Assembly (NCBI GenBank): GCA_001643675.2
Contig: LSRY02000074.1
Span: forward strand, 47,511-111,510
Direction: 5' to 3'
Length of the DNA stretch: 64,000 nt
Source of the DNA: Monocercomonoides exilis PA203
Taxonomy: Eukaryota > Protista > Preaxostyla
The notes under the pieces were generated by a model. It made no database searches, was not told where the DNA came from, and saw only the letters and a list, made by a program, of their open reading frames with translations. Below are positions 19,398 to 38,486 of this stretch, piece after piece. Positions within the stretch are counted from its first letter, which is position 1; each line of letters begins with the position of its first letter. Position numbers and translations under genes: made by a program.

Positions 19398-19534
19398 TTA
19401 ATTTTTCTAATATTTTTTTCTCATTCATTCAAATTATTAGAGCTTGTTTTTCTCAAAAAGCTGTAACAAACCAATGAGATACTTATTAAAACATAAACAG
19501 TTGTTGGAGATTTGAGTCCAAGTGAAAGAAGCGA

Positions 19535-20750
19535 ATGTTTGTTCGGTTGAAGGTGGAGTTTTCATCTTCTTTAATGGGGATCAGGACAAAGCGGTTAGCG
19601 TGCAAGGCGCTGGCATTTGCTGCGGAGCATCTGGACAACGACGTGGAGAAGATATATCATGCGGCGTTGTGTCCTCTGATATTTACGATTGGGAGCTGGA
19701 TGCCGGGAAAGCAAAAGAAGCTTTTATTGGTGGCTCAGGAGTGCGTTATGATGGGGACAGAGCAGAGCAAGAGCGAGTCGGATGCGATTAGGGGGTGAGA
19801 GTGCATGTGGAGAGGAAGAGTGTGGGGGCAACAGATGTTTTCAGTCTGACCGTGCAGAGCTGTCAGATAGATCAGTGGTGGGAATATACAGCTTGAGTTC
19901 GTATGGAGGGAGCTGCGCTGTGCTGTTTTCACTTCCTAAAACCTGTGTATGGAAAAAAGTACGGAGAGCGGATTATGACATACCGTTTTGATCACGCAAG
20001 GTGGATCACCGAGAGTCAGGGAAACAGGAGGATCGTGCAGGAGGTGATAGAAAAGAGCGCAGCAGAAGAGGAGGTGGTGAAGCGGGCTGGAGGAAAAGGT
20101 GAAGAAGGGAAGGCAGGGGAGGAGAAAGAGGAAGGATGAAAGTTTCATGAGGCATCAGCGATTGTGCCGAAGGGAAAAGGGGAAGGGGTAGGCAGGAGGC
20201 AGAGTCTGCATGAAAGGTGTTGGTTTCCGAACATCCTGTTAATGGGGATGAGTGCGGTGGGGGTGGTGGTGCTGCTGGTGACTGTGGAGTGCTGTGTGTG
20301 GAAGCGGCATCTGGTGGAGTCGTGGGAGATGGTGCTGGGGTTGAACTTGGAGACATAGGAGGCGGAGTTTGAGTTGATGATGCGGAATGCGGTGGTGGTG
20401 GTGTGTGCTGCTGAGTGCGCTGATGCAGGACAAGGAGGCAGCAGTGGCAGACCTGAAGAGCAAAGCTGAGAGTGAAGGCGTTGAAGGCAGAGATGGAGAA
20501 GTCAGTGGAAATGAATCAAAGGAGATTCACGGTGGCAATGAAAGAAAAAAGGAAGGAGGAAGAGATGGTGAGGAAAATAATCAAAACATTGAGAATAAAA
20601 GAAGAGATGGAGGATGAGAAGATGGAGAGGAGAAAGAGAGGGAGATGGGAGGAGAGGAGAAAGTGGAATTTGAAATTTTAAGAAGGAAGGAAATGGTAAT
20701 GAGGATGAGGGAGGAGAAGAGCGTGTAGTGGGATTCGAAAGAAAAATGAA
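19535..20750 (+). pseudogene. Degenerate MULE-domain transposase
   Basis: Broken frames give HLDND...CPLIFTIGSWMPGK, VMMGTEQS...DAI and GAALCCFHFLKPVY, resembling the MULE D...D-x-E/Q...CxFH pattern. Several stops and frameshifts. Confidence 0.55.
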
Positions 20751-21684
20751 GATCACGTGAATAGATGCGTGAGCCAGTTTTAAACTGTGATAGCGGATGA
20801 AGGAAACACTCTGACTTGGCTACTGAACTGAGTGAATGTGTCGGGAAGAGGAGAAGGTGAAGAAGCAGAGTGAGGGCATATGGAAAATTTGCAGCAGAGG
20901 TGATTTTTTATAACATAATCTTAAAAAATGAGTTTTTATTCATACTCATTGTTGATAATTCTCTGCCGTCAATGCTTTGCAATGTGACTTATCAAATAAA
21001 AATATTTTTTTTTGAAAAAATATCCTATTGTTAATAAAAATGAACAAATTTTGTATTGTTAATTTAATTAAAAAACAATATTGAAATCATGAAAATTGTG
21101 TCTCATAAAGTAAAAATTTGTTTGCCACAAAAAAACACTCACATTTTTTGCTTTTTGAAAATGAATTATAATAACAATTTGAAACAGAAAATCATTCTTC
21201 AAAAACACTAACAAATAAATGAAAGAAACTAGTTGAATATTCGAGGTGCATGATATAACTTTTTTCAAAGATGAAAATTGAATAGTCACTGCAGAAATAT
21301 TTAAATAAGGTTTACTGAAGGAAATTGATATTTTTTATATATTTTGATATATTCTTTCATTTTGGAAAGTTATTTATTGTTAATGTGTTTTTATTAAAAA
21401 ATTGCTTATTCCTTCCACAAAAAAAAAAAAAAAAAATAAAATAAAAAATAAAATTAAAAAATAAAAAAAAAAAGTGACGGACACTGACTGACGTGTCCTC
21501 AATATTTCCAATGTGACGCAGATGTTAAATAGCAATATCATAAACAATAAGTATTCCCTGTTTCAACTCATTTTTTTCAAAATTCCATTGTGATAAAAAT
21601 TCTGAACAAAGCTCGAACGAAAGTCTGATTTCAAAAAGGATCAGCCAAATAAAAAAAAAGGAAGGAAAAAAATAAATATATTAT

Positions 21685-21940
21685 GGGTGATTATTTTTGA
21701 AATCATAACTTTTTTCGGGGTGTCGGTTTTCAAAAATTGTTTGTTTTATAAAAGAAAATATTTGTTCAAAAGTGAAAAAGCATGATAATTGTTTTTAAAT
21801 ACAAATGGTCTTTCGGAATCAACGACTAAAATGAATTCAAAAAGCCTTTTCACTTTTCAATGTTCATCTGAGAGTATTCAAGATCATTTTCAGAACCAAA
21901 AATTTTGTCTGAAATAATATGATTTCAAAAATAATCACCC
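21685..21940. mobile_element. 256-bp MITE of the GGGTG...CACCC family
   Basis: Perfect 23-bp TIR GGGTGATTATTTTTGAAATCATA, flanked by ATTAT on both sides. Confidence 0.9.
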
Positions 21941-22029
21941 ATTATCAATACACATAATAAAGTTATTATTACTAAAAAATAATGAAGCATACACAAAAAA
22001 ATTATCAAAAAAAAGCAAAAATGCATATA

Positions 22030-22360
22030 GCACAGAATTGAAATGTATTCACATCTTAATTATAGTAGGATGTCTGGGTTTGCCGAGAATTTTGCAAGAG
22101 ACAATCGGTGAAAAAAAAATACATACATTTTTCAAAGTGTGCTTCCAATATATGTCATTTTATTTGTTATCCCGTTTAGGTGGAATGGTGTCAGTTATAA
22201 TTTTTGTTCGGAAATGTTTGGAATACATAGGAACTTTGTGGCATATTAATTATCTATTATGAGGTGTTGAGCGATGGACATTATAAATCAAAATGAAACA
22301 ATTCTTGAAGGCGAAAACATTATTGTTGAAATTGATAAATGCGCATTTTGGAAAAGAAAA
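22030..22360 (+). pseudogene. Outer Merlin/IS1595-like transposase (element A), 5' half
   Basis: Reads ...ILFVIPFRWNG...MDIINQNETILEGENIIVEIDKCAFWKRK with stops. Continues in frame at 33847 once the insert and one TSD copy are removed. Confidence 0.8.
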
Positions 22361-22789
22361 GGCATAGGTGTAAATTGTACCACTTTCAGTTTGAATTTTT
22401 TCAAAATTTGAATATCATAGCGTTAATCTGCATAATTTAACTGAGCGATTCAAGGAGGGAAATTGCGAAATTCGATCATGAAAATTTACTCGATTTTTAT
22501 GATTGATCAAAAATCCCATAATTTATTTTCTCATTTTTGATCTAAAACATTATTTATATTTAAATTTCCGAGAATGTCAAAATATGCATATTCTTATAAA
22601 TATAGTTTGTGGAAACGCATGTTAAGTTGAAATCAATATAAATGACATTAATACAACAAAGAGAGCTATGTTGCGGTGCAGATCATTAATATAAGGAGAG
22701 GATTTCATGCTATTAAAGTTGACAAACAAAACAAGAAAGATATTCATTTTTTCACAAAAGGAACAAATATTTTATCGCAATTGCAATTG

Positions 22790-25700
22790 CTGTTGAAATG
22801 GTGGCGGGATAAAGCTGTATCTGGATGATAACTCACACGACTTCTCAATTGTTTCTGTCGACTTTTCACGGTGCGAAGCAAATTCTGGCGGAAATTATGT
22901 GTTTGTAAATGGGAGCGATCCTGCAAGCTGGAAAAGAAGCTCCACAACGCTGAATGTCCAACATGATAGTAAAAAATTCAACGAGTTGGTGGGATATGAT
23001 CGGAACGATGAAGAAATGGGACAATTCACGCTGAATATCTTTTTGGACACAATATCCGGTGCGGCACATGTTGGGAAGGCAAAGAATAATCCGGGGGGAT
23101 ACAATTCGTGGTTTTGCGGGCTCGATTATTATCCGTGTGCAACAATCACTTACACTGGCCAGACACGATATTCGGGCAAGGACAAAAACATCGAATTGGA
23201 TTCAGGATTCGAGCTTACCGAAGAGGTGTCCATGACAGATGTTGACAAAGAATGGCTGATCTCTTGCGCCACAAAGGTGATGAATGTGAAAGTGATTCGC
23301 CCGAGTTCCATAAGTTCTGATTAGCTGATCAATGCGCAGAGTACATGCAAAATAGAAAATATCACCTTTTCACTGCCAACAGAGCTTGCAGACGTGACAT
23401 CGCTGATTTTGGCCAACTCCACATCCCTCACACTCACAAGCTGCTCGATCACAAATTTTGCACTGATTCCTTCTGGTACATTTTTTGCATACAGTTTTGT
23501 AAAAGCTATTTCAGGGAAACTCAATGTGGTGCAGTTAGTCATTGAAAAAACATTGCTATTTGGAGATCACTCGTTGGTCAAGGTTGAATCAGGGGTGAAT
23601 GTTGTGCACTTCAAAGATTGCATTATTAACTCGATTGACAAGAAAAGTGGAAATGTAGGGTTCCTGGAAGGAGCAGTTGGAGAAGACTTTGGGGAAGGAC
23701 CGATAGGAATTGTTGTGATTGAATCATGCGTAATGAAGAACTGCAAATGCCGGAGAAAAGACGGAAAAGACGGAAAAGGAGGAGGAATATGCATGAGTGT
23801 GAAAGGAAAAGGAAGCGTTGTGGTGAATGGGACGAGCGAGTTGGATGGGTGCGAGGCATACAAAGGGGAAGATGCTGAAGGGAGAGGCGGAGGAATAATG
23901 CTGGAGATGCTGAGCTCGAAAAGAAAGTTGGAGATTGCATCAGAAGTAAAATTTTTGGTCGATACGGCAAACAAAGCTAAATACGGGAAGGATGTGTTTG
24001 TCAGTTGCGGTTCGGGAATATTGCTGGAAACAAAAATAGATGCAACAACATTTGGGTTTTTTGATTCAAGCGAAATGCCAACAGATGTGCTGAAGTTGTG
24101 CGGGAGCGAGGATGGGAACGGAGAGAAAGTGATTCCGCTGTTTATATACTTGCAATCAGTCATATCAAAGTTGACTGTTGATGTGAACAAAGAAGGCTCA
24201 TTAAATCACAATTACTGCGGATTCGAGAATTTTGGGTGCAAGTCAGTTGAATATTGCGTGAACAAAAGAGTGAACAGTAGCATTCATGAAATCGAAGTTG
24301 TTTCAGAATCTTCAACATCAGATGAAATAAAAGTGGAAACAATTGAGGTGAGTATATCAGGGAAGGCAGCAACAGCAGCAAACGGAATGATGAGAATTAA
24401 CGTGAAGGATATTGGATCTAAAACCGGTAATTATCTTGTAAATTGCAAATTGCCATTTAGCATGAATAATTTGTTGTTTGTGATGTTCAGCGAAATAAAT
24501 ACAAAAAGAAACGCATTTATCTATTCCATGTCAACACTCACGATCACAAGCTGTTCTGTCTCGTTTGCAGACGATGGATCAGCCAGCGAAAAGATTGCAT
24601 ACAACATACTGAACGTTGATGGAGGAACTCTGACCTTCGACGGATTTGTGATGGAAAAAACAGTAACAATGAATAAGGTGTCACCAATAACAATTTCAAA
24701 TGGAGTGAAGCTGGAGATAAAGAACAGCAGGGTGAGTGGATTGACGGTGGAAGGCGGGAGCGGAGAAGGAAGAGGTTGCATTGATGCTGCGATAAAAGAA
24801 GGAGGAAGCGCAGTTGTGGATAACTGCAGCATTTCAACAATATGCACAGGTGGAAGTGGGATGAAAGGAGGAGGGATGATGATTTCAGTTGAGTGTGGAG
24901 GAAGTTTGCAGATTCAAACTGTTACATTCACAGGATGCCAGGTTTCAACAGAGGATAACTTTCATAAAGGAAGAGGAATTGGTGGAGGGATGTTTGTGAG
25001 TTTGGTGAGATGATTGAATCATTTTCGTTGGGGAGCGTGATATTTGAAAGATGCAATGCTTGGAAAGGGAAGAACATGTTTGTTTCTGGATGGAATCTGA
25101 GTGAAATTGTGAACAAGAAGCACCTGAAATGGGAGATGGATTCAGAAGAGTTAGGATCATTGGATGAGCTGTGTGGATGGGAGAGGAAGGCGAAAGGAGA
25201 GGAGGGATATATGATTCCACTAGTTGTGTATTTGTGGAATAATTGGAGTGGGGATGGGTTTGTTTCGAGAGAGAAAGGAGGAGACTTCAGCGGGTGTGGG
25301 TTTTCTGAAGCACCATGCTCATCGATTGACCACTTGATATCACTGAGATATGAGCCACTTGAAAAAGGCGAAACACACATCAACATTGTGGGATCAGGGT
25401 TGCTGAGCCGTTCCATTTCATTTTCATTTTCTTCATCATCAATTTCAGATTCACCAAAAGTGGTGATTGAAGGGACAATGAAAGGGACAGGAGTGACGAT
25501 CAGTGATGAGTGTGAGAATGATTTGGGTGATGGTTCAATGATATCGTCGAATGTGAGTCTGTCATTCTTCAATGTGTCATTCACCAAACCCAGCATAACC
25601 ACCCACCATGAAGTATTTATTGAATCTTCAGGAACAAGTTCATTATTGTCAGTTGCTGATTGTTCATTTGGGTCATCGAGTGGGACGGTTGAAAGTTTTG

Positions 25701-27121
25701 CATATTGCGTGATAAAAGTGAACGGAGTGAGCATATCAATTCAGAGCAGCACGTTGAATAAGATCAACGAATTGAAAGGGTTCATTGATTTCAGCCCAAG
25801 TGCGAGCCAGGTGACGATTCAGAATGTGAACATTTCATCAGCCACTTTGACAGCAAACAGCCTGATTTCGATGACAGAAGAGGAAAACCAGATGAATGGA
25901 AATGAAAACACTCATTTGAATGGCAACAAGCCTGTGTTGAAAGTTGTGTTCTGTTCGCTTGAAAACATCAAGAACGAAGGAAGCAGTGCAAGCGTCTTTG
26001 AATTGGGATCGTTTGAGAATGCGATAGGTTGCTCGATCGAAGACTGCACAATGTCCACGTGCAGGAGCGATTTGAACACAGAAGGAGGAGGAATGAAATT
26101 GGTGCTGAAGAGTGAAGAATCGGTTTTGAAGGTGAATGGGAGCACGTTTTCGACATGCAGATGCTCGATGGAGTCAGGGCGCGGCGGAGGGTTGTTTATC
26201 GATGGAGCCGATCCAAATATCAGTTATGCTGATGAAAGTCAGATTCCATCTCTGAATTTCAAGATTGTGAATATCTTGTTCAGGCTGAACGACGCATTTG
26301 TTGGGAAAGACATATTCATCAAATGCCATTCAATTGAGCACCAGATCAACGAAACACTGTTCTCGCTGAACTACAACCAGGAATCATTGGCCACAAACAA
26401 CTCCATCTGCGGGAGCGATCTTAAAGGGAATATTGACATGGATGTTATTCCTCGGATCACATTCTTCAAAGGGCTTCAAGTATTTTTGAATGGGTCGGGG
26501 GATGATGGCAGACGATGAGGAGCTCAGAGCAACCCATGTAGCAGCATCAACGAAGCGATTGAACACATTGAGCAAGGAGTGATGAATGCGATTCTGATTG
26601 ATGGAGAAGGAATTGTTTCTGGCGAATGCACCATCGGGGATCTGAATGTGAATTCATACAAAAAGACACAGGCGATTGTGAAGCTGAAATCTAAGATTGA
26701 GAAATCGGCAGAGAAGGATTGCATCATGGAGTTTATAAACGAAAGCGCTGTGGAGAGGTGCTCATTCGAGTTTGAAGATACCTTTGAGGCTTCTCACAGC
26801 TACATCCTGAAAGTGAAGAACGGGTCAATGGAGATCCAAAAATGCGAGTTCTACTCATCAGCAACAACGGTTGATATGAAGCTGAACAGTTCGGTTGTGG
26901 GCGTGGAAAGTGGAGAGATGAAGATATTTGATTCAGCATTTAGAGATTTGCATTCAGCAGGATCGGTGCTATTATTCAACAGAGAATCGAATGTGACGCT
27001 GCTTGAAACGAGCATTTCAAATATCAAAAGTGATGGAGATGCTGTGAGTGTTTGGGGAAAAGCGAAGGTTGTGATGAAGATCATGATAATTGAGAATGTG
27101 ACTGTTTGTTCAGAAAGATGA
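22790..27121 (+). pseudogene. Captured fragment of a large Cys/Gly-repeat (pectin-lyase/beta-helix-like) host protein family
   Basis: Collinear ORFs 22899-23324, 23394-25013, 25010-26518 and 26579-27121 are broken by an in-frame TAG (23322), a frameshift (~25010) and a TGA (26516). Recurring GxGGG-hydrophobic, A..GKD(V/I)F and CG...PC.SI units. No start or signal peptide, and no C-terminus. Confidence 0.8.
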
Positions 27122-27539
27122 GTTGTTGTGAAAGAAGATATTGAACAATAGGCAAAATGGTGTATATCATTTAATGAAGACAGGCATCCTTTTTTAAATG
27201 ATACTATGGTGATTAATAAAAATGAAACCGTCTTTAAAGATGAAGAAAATTTAGAAGTAAAGTTGAGAAAAGAAATTGCAAATGGATTTACATGGTGCAC
27301 TTTGATAGTTACTGTTTTTTCATCTTCCTAATTATTTAAATGGAAGAGGGTTTTTGATGTAATTGGAAAAGTTAAACAATCTATTGATTATTCAGCGTGA
27401 TGTGATAAATGTTGTTTGATAAGAAAACAATGGAAAAAGAAAATTACAATGTTATCGGTTTTGTTGTTGTGCCAATGCTTTTTGACTTCAGCAAGCTTCG
27501 AAGCATTCGCCTTTGAGTCAACTGTCTCAATTGTCTCAA

Positions 27540-28165
27540 TTATCTTTCATATTTTTGTTTCATTGTTTTCAATCGTTGCTCAATATAGAATTCTGTGTTT
27601 TCTTTGCACATGTGAATTCCATGTGTCTCAATGTTCGAAAGAGATAATTGCTTTGTTGAGTATTTTCTTTTTCGTTTCTTTCTGAGAGAATTATCTTCAT
27701 CATTATCATCTTCTTCTTCTTCTTCGTCTTCCTTTTTCTCATCATCATCCTCCTCCTCCTCCTCCTCATCTTTCTCATCTTCATCGTCTTCATCATCATC
27801 GTTGTCGCAAAAGTTTTCAAGGTTGGATGCATTTGTTGGATCATAACTTGAATCATCATCCATTGTTTCACTTTTTTGTCAGTTTCATCAATTCTTTTGC
27901 GCTTTTGTTTTTTGCATATCATTTCTAAATCAGATGCATCGAACATTTCGATTGGTATTTACTCTTTTTGCGTTATTTCCTTTTTCTTTTCATATAATTC
28001 TTTTCCTTTGTCTTTTTCTTCCTTTAAGAGTGAAGATATTCTGCCTTCACACTTCTCATATGTGTATATGAACGCCTGTAATTCTTTTGTGTTGATTTTG
28101 GAGAGGTCACTCATCATTTTCTGAAGATCATTCGAATTATTGAACCTATAAACATATGCATATAT
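27540..28165 (-). pseudogene. Merlin B transposase, 3' part (YRFN motif and acidic tail)
   Basis: After removing the 28166-32766 insert and one ATAT, the frame reads KEYIYAYVYRFNNSNDLQKM. In-frame TAA near 27959, then an acidic/basic tail. Confidence 0.8.
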
Positions 28166-28849
28166 GGGTGATTTTTTTTTACATCATAAAAAAAGATCAA
28201 AAATCTAAAAAATAAAATCAATTGTGGCATTTTTTGATCAAAGAGTTAAATCAATTTTTATACAAGCATTTAGCTTTTATTTCTGTAGTATATATTTGTT
28301 TTATTTCCTTATGCAAAAAACATACCTCTTTTATGTTTTTTAATGAAAGAGAATTTTTTGATCAAGTTTAATAAAAATTAACTTAAAATAAATGTATAAA
28401 ACTTCAGAAAAAAAATAGAAGATTCAGGACTAACTTTACAATACTGATAATAGGAAAATAAAAACAAAATACATTGGAAAAGTTTGATATTAGAAAAAAA
28501 ATTATTTTTTTGACTTTCAAAAAAAGAGAACTGTTCGATATCTTTAATTTCTTTGGATTTAACATCACAAAATCATCATTCCAGCTTTGTAGCTCAGCTT
28601 CAATAGTAAAATAAAATTTAAAACTGTGGAAAAGGAAATGTTTCTAAGAATAACAATTGATTTAAATTCGTTATCTCTTTCTATTCACCTGATTATTTGG
28701 CGTTCAAACTTTCTTCTCCATCCCCTTTGTTCTTCATCCAAAAATTTCCATTATTGTTTCTTTCACATTCTCATTCCACATACACCCTCTGTCGCTCCTT
28801 AATCGCCAAAAAAATTCATTCCACTCATCCTGCACTAACACTTTCTTCT

Positions 28850-29450
28850 TCTTTTATTTCTTCGTTAATTGCCACTTTCCCTACCCTCTCCCTCTCCATC
28901 ACCAACTGCACCATCACCAACATCAACACAGCTCCACAACACCAACAGACTGCCGCCGATGGCGGGTGCATCTCATTCGCCTCATCTGCCTCTGCCAACA
29001 CATTTTCTGTGAGCAACACCATCTTCTCCAGCTGCTCTGTCAGCGAGGATACAAGTTCTGGAGGAAGAGGCGGTGCTCTCATGATCGAGTTCAACCAAGG
29101 CTCACAAGTGTCAGCATCTACATTTTCCATCACCAATATCGTGTTTTCAGCCAACAAGGCGAGTGTCGGAAGAGATGTGTATTTTGTGTGCGAATCATTT
29201 GTCGCTTCTGTGAAAGAGCCATTGTTCGCCTTCATGGGAAACATCACTCAGAAAGACAACTCGGTTGTTGGACACGATAGAACGCAAATGTTTAACGATT
29301 GAGATGTTGACTTATTTATATTTCTCAGTTGACAATATGCAAACACAGTAGATATTAGTGGCGTGTCTGGTGTCAAGGAAGTGAATCGTGGTTTGGAGAA
29401 AGGATCATGTTTAAATGAGAACGACGGGATTGGGCTCCTGAAAAATGCGC
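28850..29450 (+). pseudogene. Fragment of the same Cys/Gly-repeat host family
   Basis: DGGCISF...SGGRGGALMI...FSANKASVGRDVYFVC...NSVVG motifs, as in the 22.8-27.1 kb cargo. Confidence 0.7.
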
Positions 29451-30299
29451 AGAAAAATGTGGCAATGACGAAGATAAAGGAGAAGATAAAATAAGCAGAA
29501 GATGAAGATGAAGACGCTGTTGTAGCAACAGAATTGCCTGTCTGTTTGTTTGCGTGTGCGTTTCTTGAAAAGTGAAAAGTCTAAAAAGGAAGTTAAAAAT
29601 ATTTAATTCTATTCATTCTTTTTCTTTCACTTTCTCTCTCCATCTCCTTCTCTTCCTCTCTCCTGGTTTTATTTTTCCTCTCTCTATCCCATTCTCCAGC
29701 CTCTATTCCCTTCGCTGCTTCTTTTCTATCTCAAGATTCCCTCCTTTCTTCAACTCTTTCACTTTCGTATTCTCACTGAACATGTCGTGAGAAGGCGCAA
29801 AAGAAAAAATTGGTACGCAGATTCGGCTGGCGGTGTGTTTTTATACGGCCGAATGCAAAAGTGGCGGAGTTGAAGAGGAGGTTAATGCAAGAAAGAAGAG
29901 AGGATTTCTGTTTCTGGTGATGTGAGCTTGGCTGACTAGAATAGCGAAGCTTCAAAGCTGTCGGTGGAGGTATATCTGAGAAGGAAGAAGTATACGAGAA
30001 GGAAGATGTGAAGGAGAAGCAGTTACAAAAGAAGGAGATACTGATAATAAAAAAGCTCTTTTGTTGATTTTGCAGAAATGAAGAATAAGAATAAGAAGAA
30101 GAAGAGGGATTACAGATGGTATTGAGAAGAACAACGCTGTCAGCTGCAACGGCGAGATCATTGTTGTTGAGATGCTCGATGGAGGAGCTTGAGCCATAGC
30201 CGAACACGAGCAGGGAAGAGGAAACACTGAGAGCGGAGAGGTTGGGGTGGGAGATAAAGAATGAAGAAATGTGAAGAGAACGAAGAGTGGGGCAGGAGA

Positions 30300-30960
30300 G
30301 GTGGACGAATTTTTAAAAGAAGATTGATAGAAGAAGTTTTCTCATGAAAACACAAAAAAGTGTGGAGTTGAGGTGTACATTCTTGTCGGCTGCAGAAAAG
30401 AGGGAAGAGGATGCAGTGAGGGATCTGTCGAGAGGAGAAGAGGGAAGAGTGTGCAGATGCAAAGGAAGAGTGAAAAGAAATATTGCAGAAGGTGAGGATG
30501 CAGTTGTTGAGAAAAGCGACAATAGCAATGAGAAAGTTGTGGCGAAGAAAACAAGTACAAGATTTCCCGAGGTTAAACGAATTGGATGAAAGCAAGGGAG
30601 ATCGGTGTATCGAAGGAGGAGGCGAAGATTCAGAAGGCATTGCAGATGGCGCGGGAGATATGGAGTGCAAATGTGGAGAGTAAAGCGCAGGGGGCAAGCA
30701 GTACTGGTAAGAAGAGGAGTCAGTATATAATTCGACGAATATCTGGTGGGTGTGGAAGAAGGTGATGAAGGGGAGGAGGAGAGATCAAGGACGGGGACGG
30801 TGTTGGTGTGTGAGGAGTCGGAGCAGCTGATGGAGGTGTTTGTGGCGAGGGAAGACTGGGTGAAATCGAGGGAAAAGAGGTGCTCGTTGATTTGGTAGTG
30901 GATGCTGGAGCACTGGAGAAAGGCATCCTCATCCACGAAGGCGTCGTTCAATGCACAGCA
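30300..30960 (-). pseudogene. Second, inverted fragment of the same host family
   Basis: LNDAFVDEDAFLQCSSIHYQINEHLFSLDFTQSSLATNTSISCSD aligns by eye with LNDAFVGKDIFIKCHSIEHQINETLFSLNYNQESLATNNSICGSD at ~26285-26420. Confidence 0.8.
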
Positions 30961-32766
30961 GTGGTTAAAGATAGGGAAATGGATAGAGTATTTTCGAACT
31001 CGGTGCAGTCGACAAACATCTCGCTGCCTCTGACAGTTAAGCCGGAGCAGATGCATTATGTGAGGATTTATGATAATATGCCCAACAGCTACTCCAGGTA
31101 AAATGGAATGAAGTATCTCCTAATATTGTTCAGCCGAATGCCCACTTGCGAGGAAATCGAAGCCCATGTCCTCTTTCACAAATGCCTTGTTGACCATGAT
31201 TGCCCAGAAATACTCACAAGAGAGATCGAGCGAGATGAATCAGCTATGTCCAACTCAAATCCGTTAAGCTTATTGAGAAAGCTCAAGTTTGTACAGAACT
31301 TGATCCTGTTTAAATGGCTTATATCCACCACAGCCTGAAGCATGCTACATATTGTCAACTTCTATTTGTCCTTCCTCGTATCGCATCCAGTTAACATCAC
31401 ATGCACAAGGGCAAACAACCTGATGGCATCAGCTGCATCCAAGAACATTTCGCCACCCAAGCCATGGCTCTGTACCTCACTTCTCATGGATAAGGCGGTA
31501 CACTCTCAAAGGATGAGCCGTTTATCAGCAGGACAGCCCCTGTCGCCAGCTCAGCTGTAACATTACCTCCTTTGGACTTCGTTTGGTTCCTCATTTCCTG
31601 CACTGCCTCGCCTCTTCAAACCCCTGCCATATTCACCTGCCTGCCATCTCAACTCCACTTCGGCACACGCTCAGAAATCAATTTTCTTCATTGAACAGCA
31701 TTGCTGCCTTCATGCTGTATTTATAAAAACAAACTGCATGTCATATTTTATTGCATTTCGAAGTCGCTCGGGATCGGCCTTTCAGAGCTTAATAATATCT
31801 GCCTGATAAATGGTCTTTCCACATCTCAAAGTTTCCAGGTGCAACATAAGTTACGCTGTTGGTATGGCCAGTTGTATTGGAAGCTGCACAAGTGGTAGAA
31901 TGCACCAAAAGCTATCAAACTTCTGACTCAAACGATAAGTCAGAAAGATTTTAATTATCACTTGATGCAGAGTTGTCAGTAAATATAGAAGTTTAGCAAA
32001 CAGGCAGATCAGCTATCGCAGCAAAGCATTGAACGATGTTGAGATCCAGATAACAGAAGGAAGCATAAAAAAAAAGGAAGCGGAAGAAGGATTGTCAGAG
32101 AGGAAGATGAGGGAAAAGAAGTGTGGATGTCTGTAAGGAAGTTGCAAAAACGCTTAGGGAGCTTTTGATTTGTCTGAAGAAAAACTTCCTGAATTGCATA
32201 GATTCTTATCTTAACATTTTTTCTTTAATAATTTTTCCATAACTTTTTTGGATCAAATTTTTAAATCAATATTTTATTGAGAAACATTTGTATATATATA
32301 AAAAAAAGAAACTTTCTATTGCTAATATGATAATGCATTTGTTGTTTAATCATTTTCAATGAAAACTGCTTTTTATATATAGAGTTTATTATAAATAATA
32401 ACTGCTTAAAAAAAAACCAATAAGATTATAATACCTCAATAACCAACAACACCGCATTTCTTTTTAAAAAAATAGTTTTATTTGTCATGAAAATTATACC
32501 AGATATGTTTAATAATCGATTGAACGCGTGTTAAGTTCTCTTTATTAAAGTTTTACAATTTAAATGAAAATTTTTAAATTTTCTTTGAAAACTGAAAAAA
32601 ACAAATATTAAATAATTAATATCTATAAATGAATAATAATAATAATAATATTTTTAGCCGTATTATCGCATAATTTTTCTTAATTTTTTCTTATCAGCCC
32701 AACCCTTAATGAAATATATATTTGATCAAACTTCGGAATTTTTTATGATATCAAAAAAAATCACCC

Positions 32767-33596
32767 ATATGTATTCTTTTTTTATTTGATATGTTCTTCC
32801 TCTTCTTGGTATGTGAGCTTTCACATGCGACCACATGCATTCAATAGTTTGTGTGTGAATTTTTCTATTTATTTTATTCACAAAGCTTGTTGAGTGGTTT
32901 ACACTTTGAAGTTTGTAACCTTTTTTTTTCTATAATGTTGTAAGCAGACCACATGTCTGAATTTACAGTTGCTGATTTGTCTATGTTTCTTTCAATAAAT
33001 TTCAAAAGTGACTGTTCATTTCTATTTGGAAGAAATTCAAGTTTGAGTTTCTGTTTCTGTCCTTCTGTTTTTCTTTCTATTGCACCCCAAAGCCATTGCT
33101 GTTCTTTTACTCTTCCCACGTTATTTTTGCTTTTTGAAATAAGAGTTTCGTCCATTTCTATTGTTTTGTTGATGCCTATTTTGTCTGAGCAATTCAGTTC
33201 AAAATAGGCACAAATTCTTCTCATCAATTGATTGAATTTTAAAATTGTTTTATTTGATAAATTTGTTTCTTTTATCGTTTCATTTATCTCGTGCCGATAC
33301 CAGTAATGGTACAACAAGCACATTGTAGAAAATGGTGATATTTTGTGTCCATTAAATATTGTTTTGTAATTCCAAAAATATTCCTTTTTGCATCTCATGC
33401 ATCGAAATGAGTAATTGCTTTTAACAATTCTCCATTTTTTAAGTAACATGTTGACACCGCACTTATGACATTTAATATTTTTGTTCAAAATGCCATATTC
33501 TTCAAACAGTGAAAGGGAATACTCGTCGCTCCCTGATGAATTAATTAAAAACTGTGTAAATGTTGGAAATTTGCTCTTTTCTGATTCCTCTTGCAT
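32767..33596 (-). pseudogene. Merlin B ISXO2-like DDE transposase, 5' part
   Basis: Zn-ribbon CHKC...CMRC, KIG...EMDET, WLWGAIER and NSDMWSAY. After an extra A in the A9 run (32921-32929) the frame continues VNHS...HTQTIECMWSHVK. Confidence 0.9.
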
Positions 33597-33838
33597 GGAT
33601 TTGATGAGTATTCAAAAATTTTAAAAGTTCAAATTTGATTATTTAATTATGTTTTAGATCAAAAATGAAAAAATAAATTATGGGATTTTTGATCAATCAT
33701 AAAAATCGAGTAAATTTTCATGATCGAATTTCGCAATTTCCCTCCTTGAATCGCTCAGTTAAATTATGCAGATTAACGCTATGATATTCAAATTTTGAAA
33801 AAATTCAAACTGAAAGTGGTACAATTTACACCTATGCC

Positions 33839-34446
33839 AAAGAAAATATAACAGATGAAGAAGAAAGAAACAAATGTGGGTCTTTGGTGCAGTGGAGCGA
33901 AAGAAAGATAAAATGGATGAAACAAGGAATTTTTTTGAAATGATTGCGCCAGACAGTTCTGCTTCAACGTTGATTTCTATCATTCAAAAGCACATTCTTC
34001 CGCATTCAACAATAATGTCAGATGAATGGAAGGCATACTCATCTCTTTCTCGTTTAGGATACAATCATCTAACAGTTTGCCATAAGAGAAAATTTTATGA
34101 TGAAGAAACTCATGCACACACAAATACAATCGAAGGATTATGGAGCCATATGAGAAGATTTTTTCCTCCCCATGGCATTCGAGAAAAATATGTAGCTGAT
34201 CAACTTGCTTTTTGGATAATTAATAAGAGAAAGATTGTGAGATTTGAAGAATTTGTATCAAAAATTATTTTCTACACAGAAAAACAAACAGAAGAAGTTG
34301 AAGAAACAGAAGAAACAGAAGAAAATGAAGAAGAAATACCTGAATTAGATGATTTTCTTATTTCTAATGACAGCAAAACAAGTGAAACCGACAATATTGA
34401 AGTAGGCGATGGTTTATCTGCCTCTGAGTATTCAGAAAACTCATAA
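33839..34446 (+). pseudogene. Outer Merlin A transposase, 3' half
   Basis: YNR*RRKKQMWVFGAVER, IMSDEWKAY, HLTVCH and HTNTIEGLWSHMR are canonical IS1595/Merlin motifs. Confidence 0.9.
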
Positions 34447-35822: not shown

Positions 35823-36166
35823 GTTTCCTAAAAAATTCTTCTTTTAATTTTGATGCAGAAATGCGGAATTAAGATAACCATATTAAGTTCCATTCATTTT
35901 TTAATTATAGATATGATCAAAGAAAAATTGACTTGAAGCTGCTTATAAAAATATGTTTTTTTGAAAAGAGTTCCATTGATACTCGAATCATTGAGAATTT
36001 TATTTAGAAAATTAAATTAAAATTAAGGAAAAATTATCACATTAAAGAACGTAAAAGTATACTTTTAAACCATTTTGAATGTTTGATTTTAACATTTTTT
36101 TAATAGATTTGTTTAATTATTGCACATTTTCCCCTCAGTTTCAAACTCATTTTTTTTGAATCATGC

Positions 36167-38486
36167 ATGTTGAGCGTAGATATTGATGAACATTTTGGCT
36201 CATACAATACATTCTTTGAAAGCTCAAATACGAGGATAAGAGAATCCATGAGCTATGGAGAGTTTTTGAGCTTAGGGCACAGAATGGACAAGATGGCGAA
36301 CTTGAGTGAAGGGAGAACGTGCTTCAGCGGAGATAGAACGCAGTCGAACGCGAAGGAGTCTTCCACGCCTTTTGGATGGGGAGAGCTCGGGCGCTGGAAC
36401 GCAAAAGAAACACAAACAGAGGATTTTCCTGAACAGAGCAGCTTGCGGAGCGGAGGAACTGAAAAGGATCGACGACTGGGGATGCAAAGCTGGAAGAGTG
36501 CGAAGGAGGCGGCACGGCTGGGCAGCGGAGCAGAACTGCAATGGGAAAGCGGAAGCATCTTCGAAGGGAAGGCAAGGATGGGAGAAAGGATGGATGCCTG
36601 TGGAAAAGGGGAATATGGGAAGAATGAAGCTCAAATGGCAAAGAGAGTCACAGAACTTCAAATGGATGAGAAGGTGGAGAAAGATGAAGATAAAGATAAA
36701 GAAAATGAAAAAGATGATAATGAGGAGGACGAGGAAGCAAGGGAGGCGGGCGAAGTTGTGGAGAGGATTCTGGGGTGGGAGATGCCGCACACGATGCGGG
36801 GGAGGGTGGCAGCGGAGGTGGCAGTGGTGGTTGATGGAAGGAAGCAGAGTGGGCTGAGAGAGGCAGAGCGAGTGGCGCTGGAGGAGAAGTGGAGAGAAGA
36901 GGACAAGAAGATGTTGGATTCACTGGGATGGACAGGAAGAACAGGAAGTGCGGAAGAAGAGGAGGAAGAAGAAGAAGGAACAGAGAGAAGAAGGAGAAGA
37001 AGAAGGAAAAGAAGAAATCAGGCGGAGAATGTTGAGAGAAGAGAGTGGGAGAAGAAGCGAAGGCGGCTGGTTCAGGAGCAGATATTGGAGGCAGAGAAGT
37101 TTGAGAGAGTGTTTGGAGTGTGGGTGCGGAAGAGGTGGGCTGCAGACGAGGCGGAAGAAGAGATGTGGGACAGAGCAGAGGAGAAGCTGAAGGAGAAGAA
37201 GCTGAAGGAGGATGCAGTGATTGGGGAAGTGGAGGAGGCGGGAGAGGCGAACGAGATGGGTGTGGAGAGGAAGTGGAGAGAGAAGTGGAGGGGAGCAACA
37301 GCAGAAGAGCTGGAAAATGGAGTGAGGGAATGCACAGGCAGATGGGCTGGAGAGATTGGGAATGCTGAAGAATACAGCATAGGAAGAAGTGAAAGAGAAA
37401 GAGAAAGAGAAAGAGAGAAGGAAAGAGAGGAGGAGGCGAAAGCGCTGCAGCAGATGTTGAAGGAAGTGAGAAGGAAAGAGGCAGAGGTAGAAGAGGAGAA
37501 AAGGAAGTCAGAAGCAGACAGATATTTTGGAGGGGATAAGAAAGGAGAAGGAGAAGGAGAAGGAGAAGGAGAAGGAGAAGGAGTGGATGTGGATGTGGTG
37601 GTGGCGTTTGGGTGGGCAAGAAGGGGGGTGAGAGGGGTGGAGGAGTTTGTGGAGACGAGGAAGAGCGGAAGAGCGGAGAGCGGTGCAGAGAGAGGAGAAG
37701 GGACGGGAGCGAGAAATGGAAGGAAGGGAAGACAGACAGAGGGAAGAAGCGAAATGGCAGATGGGAAAACGAAGAAAGCGAGTGTTGGGAACAAGAAAGA
37801 AAGCTGTAAGTGCGAATGGGGAAGAAGAAGAAAAGAAGAAGAAGAAGAAGAAGAATCAGAAGGGAGAGAAAGGGAGAGGGAGAGGAAAGAGAAAAGAAAC
37901 ACAAGGAGAGTGGGCAGAGCGAATCAGAGACCCGTTTTGGGACAAATGGAGCAGCACCAATGGCTTTGGAGAGGGCAGTGGACTGGAAGTGCCAGCATAT
38001 GTGTGGGACACAGGAGGAAAGGGAATGAGAATGGGAACAGAATGTGGAGAATGTGGAGAGCACGAGGATGTGAATGGAAATGGAAATGGAAATGGGAACG
38101 AGGAAGATGTGAGATGTGGAGTAGTTGTGCCGCTGTGCGTGTGCAGCGGGAGAAGGAGAAGAAGCAGGCAGATGGAAGAAGAGAGAAGGAGGAGGAGAAA
38201 GAGGTTGGCGTTCGAGCGGGAGAAGGCAAAAGCAGAGCGGCTGAAGAAGTCGCCGCCAGGTGTGTTCTATTTGTGGGTGTATGATGTGATCGACCTCCGA
38301 CTGCGGAAGGCGCGGAAAAGAGGGCCAGGGAAGAGAAAAGGGAAAGGAATGGGAAAGAGGTGGATGGGGTGGAACGAGAAGGAGGACAGTTGGCAGACAG
38401 AGGAGGAGGAGGCAGAAGAAGAGGAGACGAGGAGAAAGAAGGAAGCAGACGCTGCTGAGCGTGGAAGGGCGATTGAGGGACAGTGA
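36167..38486 (+). CDS. Hypothetical charged/low-complexity protein (probable frameshift or intron near 37650-37800)
   Basis: Long purine-rich ORF 36167-38284 overlaps ORF 37647-38486, which carries the more protein-like C-terminus. No recognisable domain. Confidence 0.5.

Follow-up and report, generated by a model that had tools for sequence, protein, structure and literature searches.

How did a Merlin transposon come to enclose more than four kilobases of a host surface-protein gene, and has it carried this piece along while transposing? The question is raised by positions 22361-33838 of the window, i.e., the whole 64,000-nucleotide stretch of Monocercomonoides exilis PA203 DNA analysed here. 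This interval is a Merlin (IS1595-type) DNA transposon, element B, in its copy at locus C74 (called W below). The TSD AAAGAAAA stands on its left (22353-22360) and right (33839-33846). The left TIR (22361-22554, plus strand) begins with GGCATAGG, measures 194 nt and is 99% complementary to the right TIR (33645-33838, minus strand). Between the TIR and the cargo lies a linker (22555-22781, plus strand) that was found at B loci only and has no host homolog. It is followed by the cargo in two parts (22782-27152 and 27158-27394, both plus strand), so that roughly two thirds of B are host-derived, and by a transposase gene on the minus strand. A later nested insertion of 4.6 kb (28166-32766; termini GGGTG...CACCC, TSD ATAT) splits the transposase gene into two parts. 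The 3' part (27447-28165) encodes aa ~277-518, including an acidic tail, and has a single frame change around aa 377. The 5' part (32767-33611) encodes aa 1-286, has its start codon at 33596 and likewise a single frame change, around aa 228-230. The nested element is missing in the C40 and C27 copies. Without it, W has 6,873 bp, and insert-free copies elsewhere have 6,874 and 6,868 bp. The unusually large Merlin of ~6.9 kb that an earlier note had described is thus confirmed, with TIRs of 194 nt where the note gave 190 bp.

Merlins have TIRs of 24-462 bp with a 5'-GG start, and those of Monocercomonoides combine a GG-starting TIR with an 8-bp TSD (PMC8101967). B agrees in both respects: against the 8- or 9-bp TSD of Merlins it has AAAGAAAA in the window and CACAAGAA at C40, and the length and start of its TIRs fall within the range. 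The intact C40 transposase matched PF12762 (DDE_Tnp_IS1595) with an E value of 4e-15 over profile positions 6-148 of 153. The transposase of W, 94% identical to it at the amino acid level, matched with E 2e-7, the nested insert confining the match to the N-terminal part. Judged by domain, TSD and TIR, B belongs to the Merlin superfamily (eukaryotic IS1595/IS1016-like). It is also autonomous in type, as it encodes a transposase whose frame of 518 codons is open in the 6,874-bp C40 copy. W itself certainly is dead, with its transposase split by the insert and marked by frame changes.

Inside B lies sequence with homology to a host gene that is not part of a transposon and occurs elsewhere in the genome, a feature typical of Pack elements. 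Homology to the host ORF spans 22782-27152, equivalent to residues ~783-2251 of a protein of 2,830 aa; with an open frame of 2,893 codons on C8, nucleotide identity is 80.6% across 4,387 bp. Hundreds of paralogs exist, and the donor family consists of single-pass membrane, beta-helix-like proteins of ~2,500-3,100 aa. When the genome was searched with the cargo, 85 matches were scored out of 4,699 candidates, mostly open frames of this length. The full-length comparison took in one host paralog, and the others entered via identity tables from genome searches. In the best-matching host gene a single TM is located at aa 2547-2565. A Pfam profile search of the host protein gave no match, a Beta_helix match to a host-type protein stayed below threshold, and the language-model neighbours of the host protein, of beta-helix/Chlam_PMP type, serve as leads only. 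Neither C8 nor other host loci were among the 40 scored matches to the B TIR in the genome.

Missing from the cargo are the N-terminus of the host protein and its cytoplasmic tail of 265 aa. Some 243 codons are deleted internally, and the cargo then resumes with 82 codons (27158-27394), a degenerate remnant of the juxtamembrane and transmembrane region (host aa ~2494-2570) that is co-linear with two 2,659-aa host ORFs (E 7e-4 and 1.4e-3). Its frame crosses a TM-like segment and ends at a stop common to W, C40, C27 and C7. The cargo is hence not simply 3'-truncated but reaches the host transmembrane segment past an internal deletion, which is new in this work. The earlier note had placed a stop-interrupted piece, truncated at both ends, at 22790-27121; the host homology and the stops hold, whereas the proposed end at 27121 has to be moved, as the remnant continues to 27394. 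In W we found in-frame stops at 23322 and 26516, a frameshift caused by a 1-bp deletion near 25006, and a boundary TGA at 22794 that W shares with C40 and C7. Every internal stop, in contrast, is private to a single copy. Between the junction regions, no inverted or direct repeat exceeded the length expected by chance (≤10 nt), in agreement with the claim that the cargo has no TIR or TSD pair of its own. With borders of this kind and a sequence co-linear with the host ORF interior, the cargo as a nested independent insertion was ruled out.

Linker and spacer specific to B occur at seven loci: C74 (the window), C40, C7, C27, C37, C45 and C21. C45 is derived by deletion and keeps the first ~450 bp of the cargo, and C21 is a recombinant with a chimeric TIR-cargo-host gene. 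The left cargo junction is identical at all seven loci and the right one in the five full-length copies W, C40, C27, C7 and C37, which thus have both junctions in common to the base. Also the host breakpoints located by blastx were the same among B copies (aa ~783-803 and 2251). Flanks of the B loci are unrelated. Perfect TSDs were seen in two copies only, and these differ, AAAGAAAA in the window and CACAAGAA at C40; those of C27 and C37 are degenerate, and none was seen at C7. From the shared junctions and the different perfect TSDs it follows that the B lineage captured its cargo once and that transposition then mobilised it to at least seven loci. The earlier note had proposed to look for one cargo recurring at several loci next to different TSDs, and its idea that Merlin transduplicates host genes in this genome is supported here. 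Segmental duplication is ruled out as the source of the copies by their unrelated flanks, and a separate capture for each B copy by the identical junctions. The note had also considered that all other B copies might be free of cargo; among TIR, linker or spacer matches, no B relative turned up in which linker and spacer are contiguous and the cargo is missing. In a brief look, an extra insert of 4.6 kb was seen in the C7 copy, and C37 carries inserts too.

A mis-join could in principle place host-like sequence between Merlin ends, in particular in a genome with 46% repeats that was assembled from Nanopore reads (PMC8767320). However, the junctions are identical to the base and the same architecture recurs at seven loci on different contigs. 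Furthermore, short-read-derived contigs from independent RNA libraries, as well as DNA runs, bridge both cargo junctions with 0-1 mismatch. We hence regard the probability of a chimeric contig as negligible.

While the junctions point to one event, the cargo sequence has a more complex history. W and C40 share 96-99% identity on the transposase side of the backbone (93% for the TIR window) and also at 23295-24591, but only 65-82% in the cargo at 22781-23000, 24735-25440 and 26171-26620. With the C8 host gene, W shares 92-93% identity at 22781-23000 and 90-97% in the greater part of 25571-27152; for its tract 26100-27150, identity with five host genes is 91-92%, compared with only 82% for C40. 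Informative sites are clustered, with 231 runs observed against 673 ± 15 in shuffles, and cargo divergence (dS 0.4-1.0) lies far above that of the backbone. These patterns show a recombination mosaic in the cargo, likewise new here, in which further genes of the host family have probably replaced patches of the original sequence. Patchy overwriting would explain why cargo tracts can resemble host genes more than they resemble the sister element. As none of the donor tracts is more than 97% identical, conversion events are not assignable to a named donor. We infer that most conversions ran from host to cargo, and part of the mosaicism could stem from recombination between divergent B lineages instead.

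Does the cargo serve the element as a second gene? It might encode a membrane-anchored beta-helix protein under selection in active master elements, with the copies seen here being their dead offspring. In agreement with this, all internal stops are private, and the ancestor of W and C40 could have had ~1,530 open codons. The cargo was also retained in C37 and C45, although their transposases have diverged to ~50% amino acid identity, and a parallel arrangement exists in a second Merlin at C10, whose transposase is 45% identical to that of B. The frame moreover passes the TM-like segment to the common stop, and RNA-library contigs bridge both junctions, although as contigs with unassigned strand and without a silent control stretch they cannot prove transcription. 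Between cargo copies, dN/dS was 0.34-0.61, and 0.34 for the host gene compared with family sequences at C10 and C21. However, tracts imported from intact host genes explain both a dN/dS below 1 and open frames without selection, and in the element-only tract of W and C40 the value of 0.49, based on 25 differences, is indistinguishable from 1. Among the copies we found neither a conserved start codon nor a signal peptide for the cargo frame, which TGA 22794 closes in W, C40 and C7. An ATG in the linker (22708) is largely conserved among B copies, yet without a conserved open frame; reading from it, stops or frame changes occur in the linker of every copy, and trial splicing of a short intron in the linker did not restore the cargo frame. 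No intact cargo copy is present in the assembly. A selected second gene thus is quite improbable, and the cargo is better understood as a captured fragment that decays.

B is not the only Merlin with such cargo. The C10 element carries a different piece from this host family, as does a 4-kb family of non-autonomous elements, for which at least 22 interior matches, no transposase and five perfect 8-bp TSDs were found. The cargo-free Merlin at C13, in contrast, measures ~2.85 kb compared with 6.9 kb for B. Since B encodes a transposase, the classic definition of a 'Pack' element does not fit it, and of the label 'Pack-Merlin' in the earlier note only the captured cargo applies to B: strictly, Pack-MULEs lack a transposase, and the truly Pack-like elements here are those of the 4-kb family. 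As shown by B and the 4-kb family, capture of host genes is a recurrent property of Merlins in the M. exilis genome.

Instead of several captures, one older acquisition might underlie all these cargos. A common Merlin ancestor of B, the C10 element and the 4-kb family would have taken up a longer piece or the whole gene, which was trimmed differently in each lineage and is recognisable only through continual conversion by host genes. The TIR termini of B and the C10 element are indeed related (GGCATAGGTGTAAATTG vs GACATAGGTCTAAATTG), over its first 131 bp the B TIR is ~90% identical to that of the 4-kb family, and B and the C10 element are alike in the position of the cargo and its tail-to-tail orientation with the transposase. 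All three cargos are pieces of one and the same host family, and placed side by side they tile most of it (aa 120-~610, 652-2304 and 783-2251). However, B and the C10 element differ at both junctions, and their linkers and spacers have no detectable similarity. The 4-kb family contains host upstream sequence and another repeat, both absent from B. With a host family this abundant (4,699 first-look candidates), independent captures are expected by chance, and a host gene adjoins even the cargo-free Merlin at C13. Common descent of the cargos therefore seems unlikely, though it is a serious possibility, and we favour a capture by the B lineage itself.

For this history as a whole, i.e., one capture by a Merlin lineage followed by mobilisation and patchy overwriting, we estimate a probability of about 80%. 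An ancestor of a small Merlin lineage acquired the host gene piece in a single event, and the piece came to lie between the left subterminal region and the transposase 3' end. Template switching in gap repair after excision is the capture route that we infer. Because the element kept its transposase, ordinary cut-and-paste with 8-bp TSDs then spread the cargo to at least seven loci as the lineage diversified. Within each inserted copy the cargo would decay, with private internal stops arising. Its homology to hundreds of host genes would at the same time have exposed it to repeated overwriting in patches, for which ectopic gene conversion and a switch of template in double-strand-gap repair are the two candidate routes.

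That Mutator-like, CACTA and Helitron elements transduplicate host genes is well established, for the most part in plants. Plant Pack-MULEs reportedly are TIR/TSD elements that amplify host gene fragments, often transcribed and mostly pseudogene-like (Jiang et al. 2004). They resemble the 4-kb family, which has no transposase, pieces from more than one source and its multiple interior matches, but belong to the Mutator superfamily, whereas B is a Merlin that encodes its own transposase. Also unlike Pack-MULEs, the Merlins studied here drew their cargo repeatedly from one giant gene family, with which it is in sequence exchange. CACTA elements and Helitrons (soybean Tgm, Ipomoea Tpn1, maize Helitrons) hold internal host gene fragments without termini of their own, as B does, and mobilise them inside a DNA transposon; their transposition chemistries and end structures are different, and none is a Merlin. 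Of the same transposase superfamily as B are bacterial IS1595-family elements, which are said to carry extra non-transposition genes between their inverted repeats (Siguier et al. 2009). Those passengers are whole functional genes, in contrast to the internal, non-functional eukaryotic gene fragment in B. In the literature searched, we found no report of host-gene capture by the Merlin superfamily. A survey of Monocercomonoides sp. PA203 based on a fragmented 454 assembly described several co-existing Merlin families with more than 100 copies, an IS1595-type DDE transposase and TIRs of mostly 23-29 bp, and mentions neither captured host sequence nor non-autonomous derivatives (PLoS One 2021, PMC8101967). 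B agrees with these published Merlins in genome, transposase type and 8-bp TSD and differs from most of them in its 194-bp TIRs.

An autonomous Merlin thus took a gene fragment of 4.6 kb along during a long diversification. Its patchwork identity provides a natural experiment on ectopic gene conversion, in which the backbone dates the copies and the cargo reveals pace and tract sizes of exchange in a large surface-protein family. For annotation, part of the ~35% of the genome listed as 'unclassified repeat' (PMC8767320) may be gene-family sequence moved by transposons. We may further speculate, although we hold this to be rather unlikely, that Merlins are long-term mobile members of a recombination network of the protist's largest surface-protein family, with pieces in at least three lineages being continually refreshed from host genes. 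Cargo pieces may then donate tracts back to host genes or seed rearrangements like the C21 chimera. If so, transposition would help to shuffle and spread variable ectodomain modules, and the cargo, convergent with the transposase, could feed RNA-based regulation of the family.

Transposition of B into another Merlin is seen in the window itself. W landed inside Merlin 'A', whose transposase remnant (C-terminal part, 33874-34446, plus strand; PF12762, E 1e-19) follows the right TSD.

Our analyses support transduplication of a host gene piece by an autonomous Merlin transposon, Merlin B. In the window (C74:47511–111510), B is bounded by terminal inverted repeats (TIRs) of 194 nt each (22361–22554 and 33645–33838, 99% complementary), both bordered by the target site duplication (TSD) AAAGAAAA (22353–22360 and 33839–33846). 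It was inserted within the transposase gene of another Merlin, seen as a PF12762 match (E 1e-19) in the ORF at 33874–34446. The IS1595/Merlin transposase of B (PF12762) lies on the minus strand, with its N-terminal part in the ORF 32874–33596 and the remainder at 27447–28177 (94% protein identity to the intact copy on contig C40). It is split by a nested element of 4,601 bp (28166–32766) with the termini GGGTG...CACCC and the TSD ATAT, whose empty site is kept in another B copy. Subtracting this insert leaves 6,873 bp, in line with the ~6.9 kb of the earlier note. B is unusually large for this genome, because a cargo-free Merlin on contig C13 (C13:364449–367300, L054 3950–6801) measures ~2.85 kb. 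The C13 element has TIRs that are perfect over at least 51 bp, and its transposase frame is open for 520 codons; the 3' part of a gene of the host family is found ~0.9 kb away.

Further B copies were collected by a genome search with the TIR and pairing of ends in an assembly of 82.3 Mb and 101 contigs; the published Nanopore assembly of M. exilis PA203 is described with 82 Mbp, 101 contigs and an N50 of 1,379,369 bp (PMC8767320). The C40 copy (C40:833747–840620, 6,874 bp, TSD CACAAGAA) has an open 518-codon transposase frame and a cargo frame of 1,536 codons with just two stops. Other copies are found on C27 (6,868 bp), on C7 (C7:1625522–1636938, L032+L048, 11.4 kb) and C37 (11.9 kb), which hold one and several other inserts, respectively, and on C45, an internal-deletion derivative of 3.6 kb. 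On C21 (L046+L050, C21:141000–158434), one TIR (C21:153435–153628) is followed by linker and cargo. The left cargo junction is base-identical at all seven loci and the right one in the five full-length copies; C21 instead follows host sequence beyond the usual 3' junction, for the ~700 codons that complete a host-type gene, and looks like a chimera that arose by recombination of B cargo with a host paralog. The 227-bp linker between left TIR and cargo and the spacer after the cargo did not occur outside B loci in the genome search. Flanks are unrelated among the loci, and TSDs are perfect only in the window and C40 copies, being degenerate or absent in the others. The same cargo thus sits at several loci with unrelated flanks, and two of the copies have different perfect TSDs. 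This was the test proposed in the earlier note, and its inference that Merlin transduplicates host genes is supported: there was one capture, followed by transposition of the cargo-bearing B. Outside the TIR on C21, as in the window, part of a different Merlin transposase is found (31% identity). The C7 copy has no recognizable TSD. An additional 4.6 kb of sequence, in which there is a distant host-family piece (aa 187–363), lies next to one of its TIRs on the inner side; the copy may represent two elements joined by recombination.

The cargo (22782–27152) aligned with 80.6% identity over 4,387 bp to a 2,893-codon open frame on contig C8, which from its first ATG encodes a 2,830-aa protein with a single strong hydrophobic segment (aa 2547–2565) and a charged tail of 265 aa. 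A profile search found no Pfam domain in this protein; its language-model neighbours are right-handed beta-helix or Chlam_PMP-type proteins, a kinship we treat as a lead only. The host family is very large: a search of the genome with a 502-aa cargo piece gave 4,699 first-look candidates and, among these, 85 scored matches, which lie mostly in open frames of 2,500–3,100 aa. The cargo corresponds to host aa ~783–2251. Stops interrupt its frame at 23322 and 26516, a TGA lies at its boundary (22794), and 1 bp is missing near 25006. No repeat above chance borders it at its two junctions. A truncated, stop-interrupted gene piece sharing B with the transposase and lacking TIRs or TSDs of its own, as previously described, is therefore confirmed, except for its proposed end at ~27121, since host-derived sequence goes on past the junction. 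There, the cargo frame stays open for another 82 codons in the best copy, encoding a hydrophobic stretch and then basic residues. Against the six-frame genome, these codons matched two 2,659-aa host ORFs (E 7e-4 and 1.4e-3; others weaker) in their juxtamembrane/transmembrane region, ~243 codons beyond the position that corresponds to the junction, and within the C8 protein it is again this region (aa 2494–2553) to which they align best. From this match it follows that the captured segment reached through the transmembrane segment and lost ~243 codons internally, at capture or later. The cargo ends ~50 bp from the transposase stop.

Divergence between the window and C40 copies is distributed unevenly. 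Identity is 96–99% on the transposase side, 93% in the TIR window and 95–99% in the cargo at 23295–24591, but only 65–82% at 22781–23000, 24735–25440 and 26171–26620. In the tract 22781–23000, the window copy is 92–93% identical to the C8 host gene, and C40 groups with C7 (88–95%). At 26100–27150, it matches five host genes with 91–92% identity versus 82% for C40, and at 24720–25500 it is closest to two host genes (87%). For the triplet of window copy, C40 and C8, informative sites fall in 231 runs, compared with 673 ± 15 in shuffles. Between cargo copies, dS is 0.4–1.0 and dN/dS 0.34–0.61, although the backbones differ by a few per cent only; dN/dS between the host gene and family sequences on C10 and C21 (0.34) is near these values. 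Most of the divergence of the cargo is explained most simply as an import from host paralogs evolving under constraint, through either gene conversion or a switch of template in the course of gap repair. Individual conversion events are unassignable to a donor because no donor tract exceeds 97% identity, and part of the mosaic may stem from recombination of divergent B lineages with one another. Ongoing sequence exchange of the cargo with its parental gene family is supported.

All internal cargo stops are private to a single copy, and this, together with dN/dS below 1, might also be indicative of a functional second gene maintained in an active Merlin lineage. We regard this as improbable, as conversion from intact host genes accounts for both features, a TGA common to three copies shuts the frame at its 5' end, the cargo copies compared have no conserved start codon and the linker is non-coding. 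RNA-seq contigs from three libraries of one study, with 0–1 mismatch to the window copy, cover 22585/22595–23236 and 27004–27438 and so span both cargo junctions; depth in the TIR bin was 0 in RNA libraries versus 1,049 in a DNA run. This suggests a transcript starting just inside the TIR, with the proviso that the contigs carry neither strand nor start and may include DNA carry-over. Another RNA-library contig runs past 28166 into empty-site sequence and hence stems from a B copy that lacks the nested element.

Passenger genes are known from bacterial IS1595-family elements. For Merlin, the literature we searched held no report of host-gene capture, transduplication or Pack-MULE-type behaviour. 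Merlins of M. exilis were described with more than 100 copies, at least seven families and 8-bp TSDs, with no mention of captured host sequence or non-autonomous derivatives (PMC8101967).

Two relatives of B carry other pieces of the host family. An 8.45-kb Merlin on C10 (C10:773399–781851, L052+L055 600–9052; TIRs 180 bp, 95%; imperfect TSD, 6/8) encodes a transposase 45% identical to that of B, tail-to-tail with a longer cargo (host aa 652–2304) whose junctions differ from those of B on both sides. A ~4-kb non-autonomous family without transposase (L036–L045, e.g. C35:707141–711139) has TIRs of ~315 bp, of which the first 131 bp are ~90% identical to the B TIR. Five of ten copies examined have a perfect 8-bp TSD, and at least 22 loci match the family's interior. 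Its cargo covers host aa 120 to ~610, joined by a 270-bp piece repeated on C42 and by ~620 bp that occur upstream in host-gene arrays on C80 and C53; the latter piece is 85–89% identical to many loci, often inverted pairs, on C80, C53 and C71. Copies whose TIRs share as much as 98% identity have interiors of ~85% identity. The host pieces in B, C10 and the ~4-kb family may have been captured separately or may all go back to a single, older capture.

The nested 4.6-kb element at 28166–32766 also contains short host-protein-like pieces (aa ~1635–1765), and a related 266-bp sequence that shares its termini is found at 21680–21945. The stretches 19500–21000 and 36000–38000 have a GC content of ~0.45–0.52, compared with ~0.25 in spacers, and are very strongly skewed towards G over C (skew up to 0.69); they presumably are coding regions of repeat-rich host genes.
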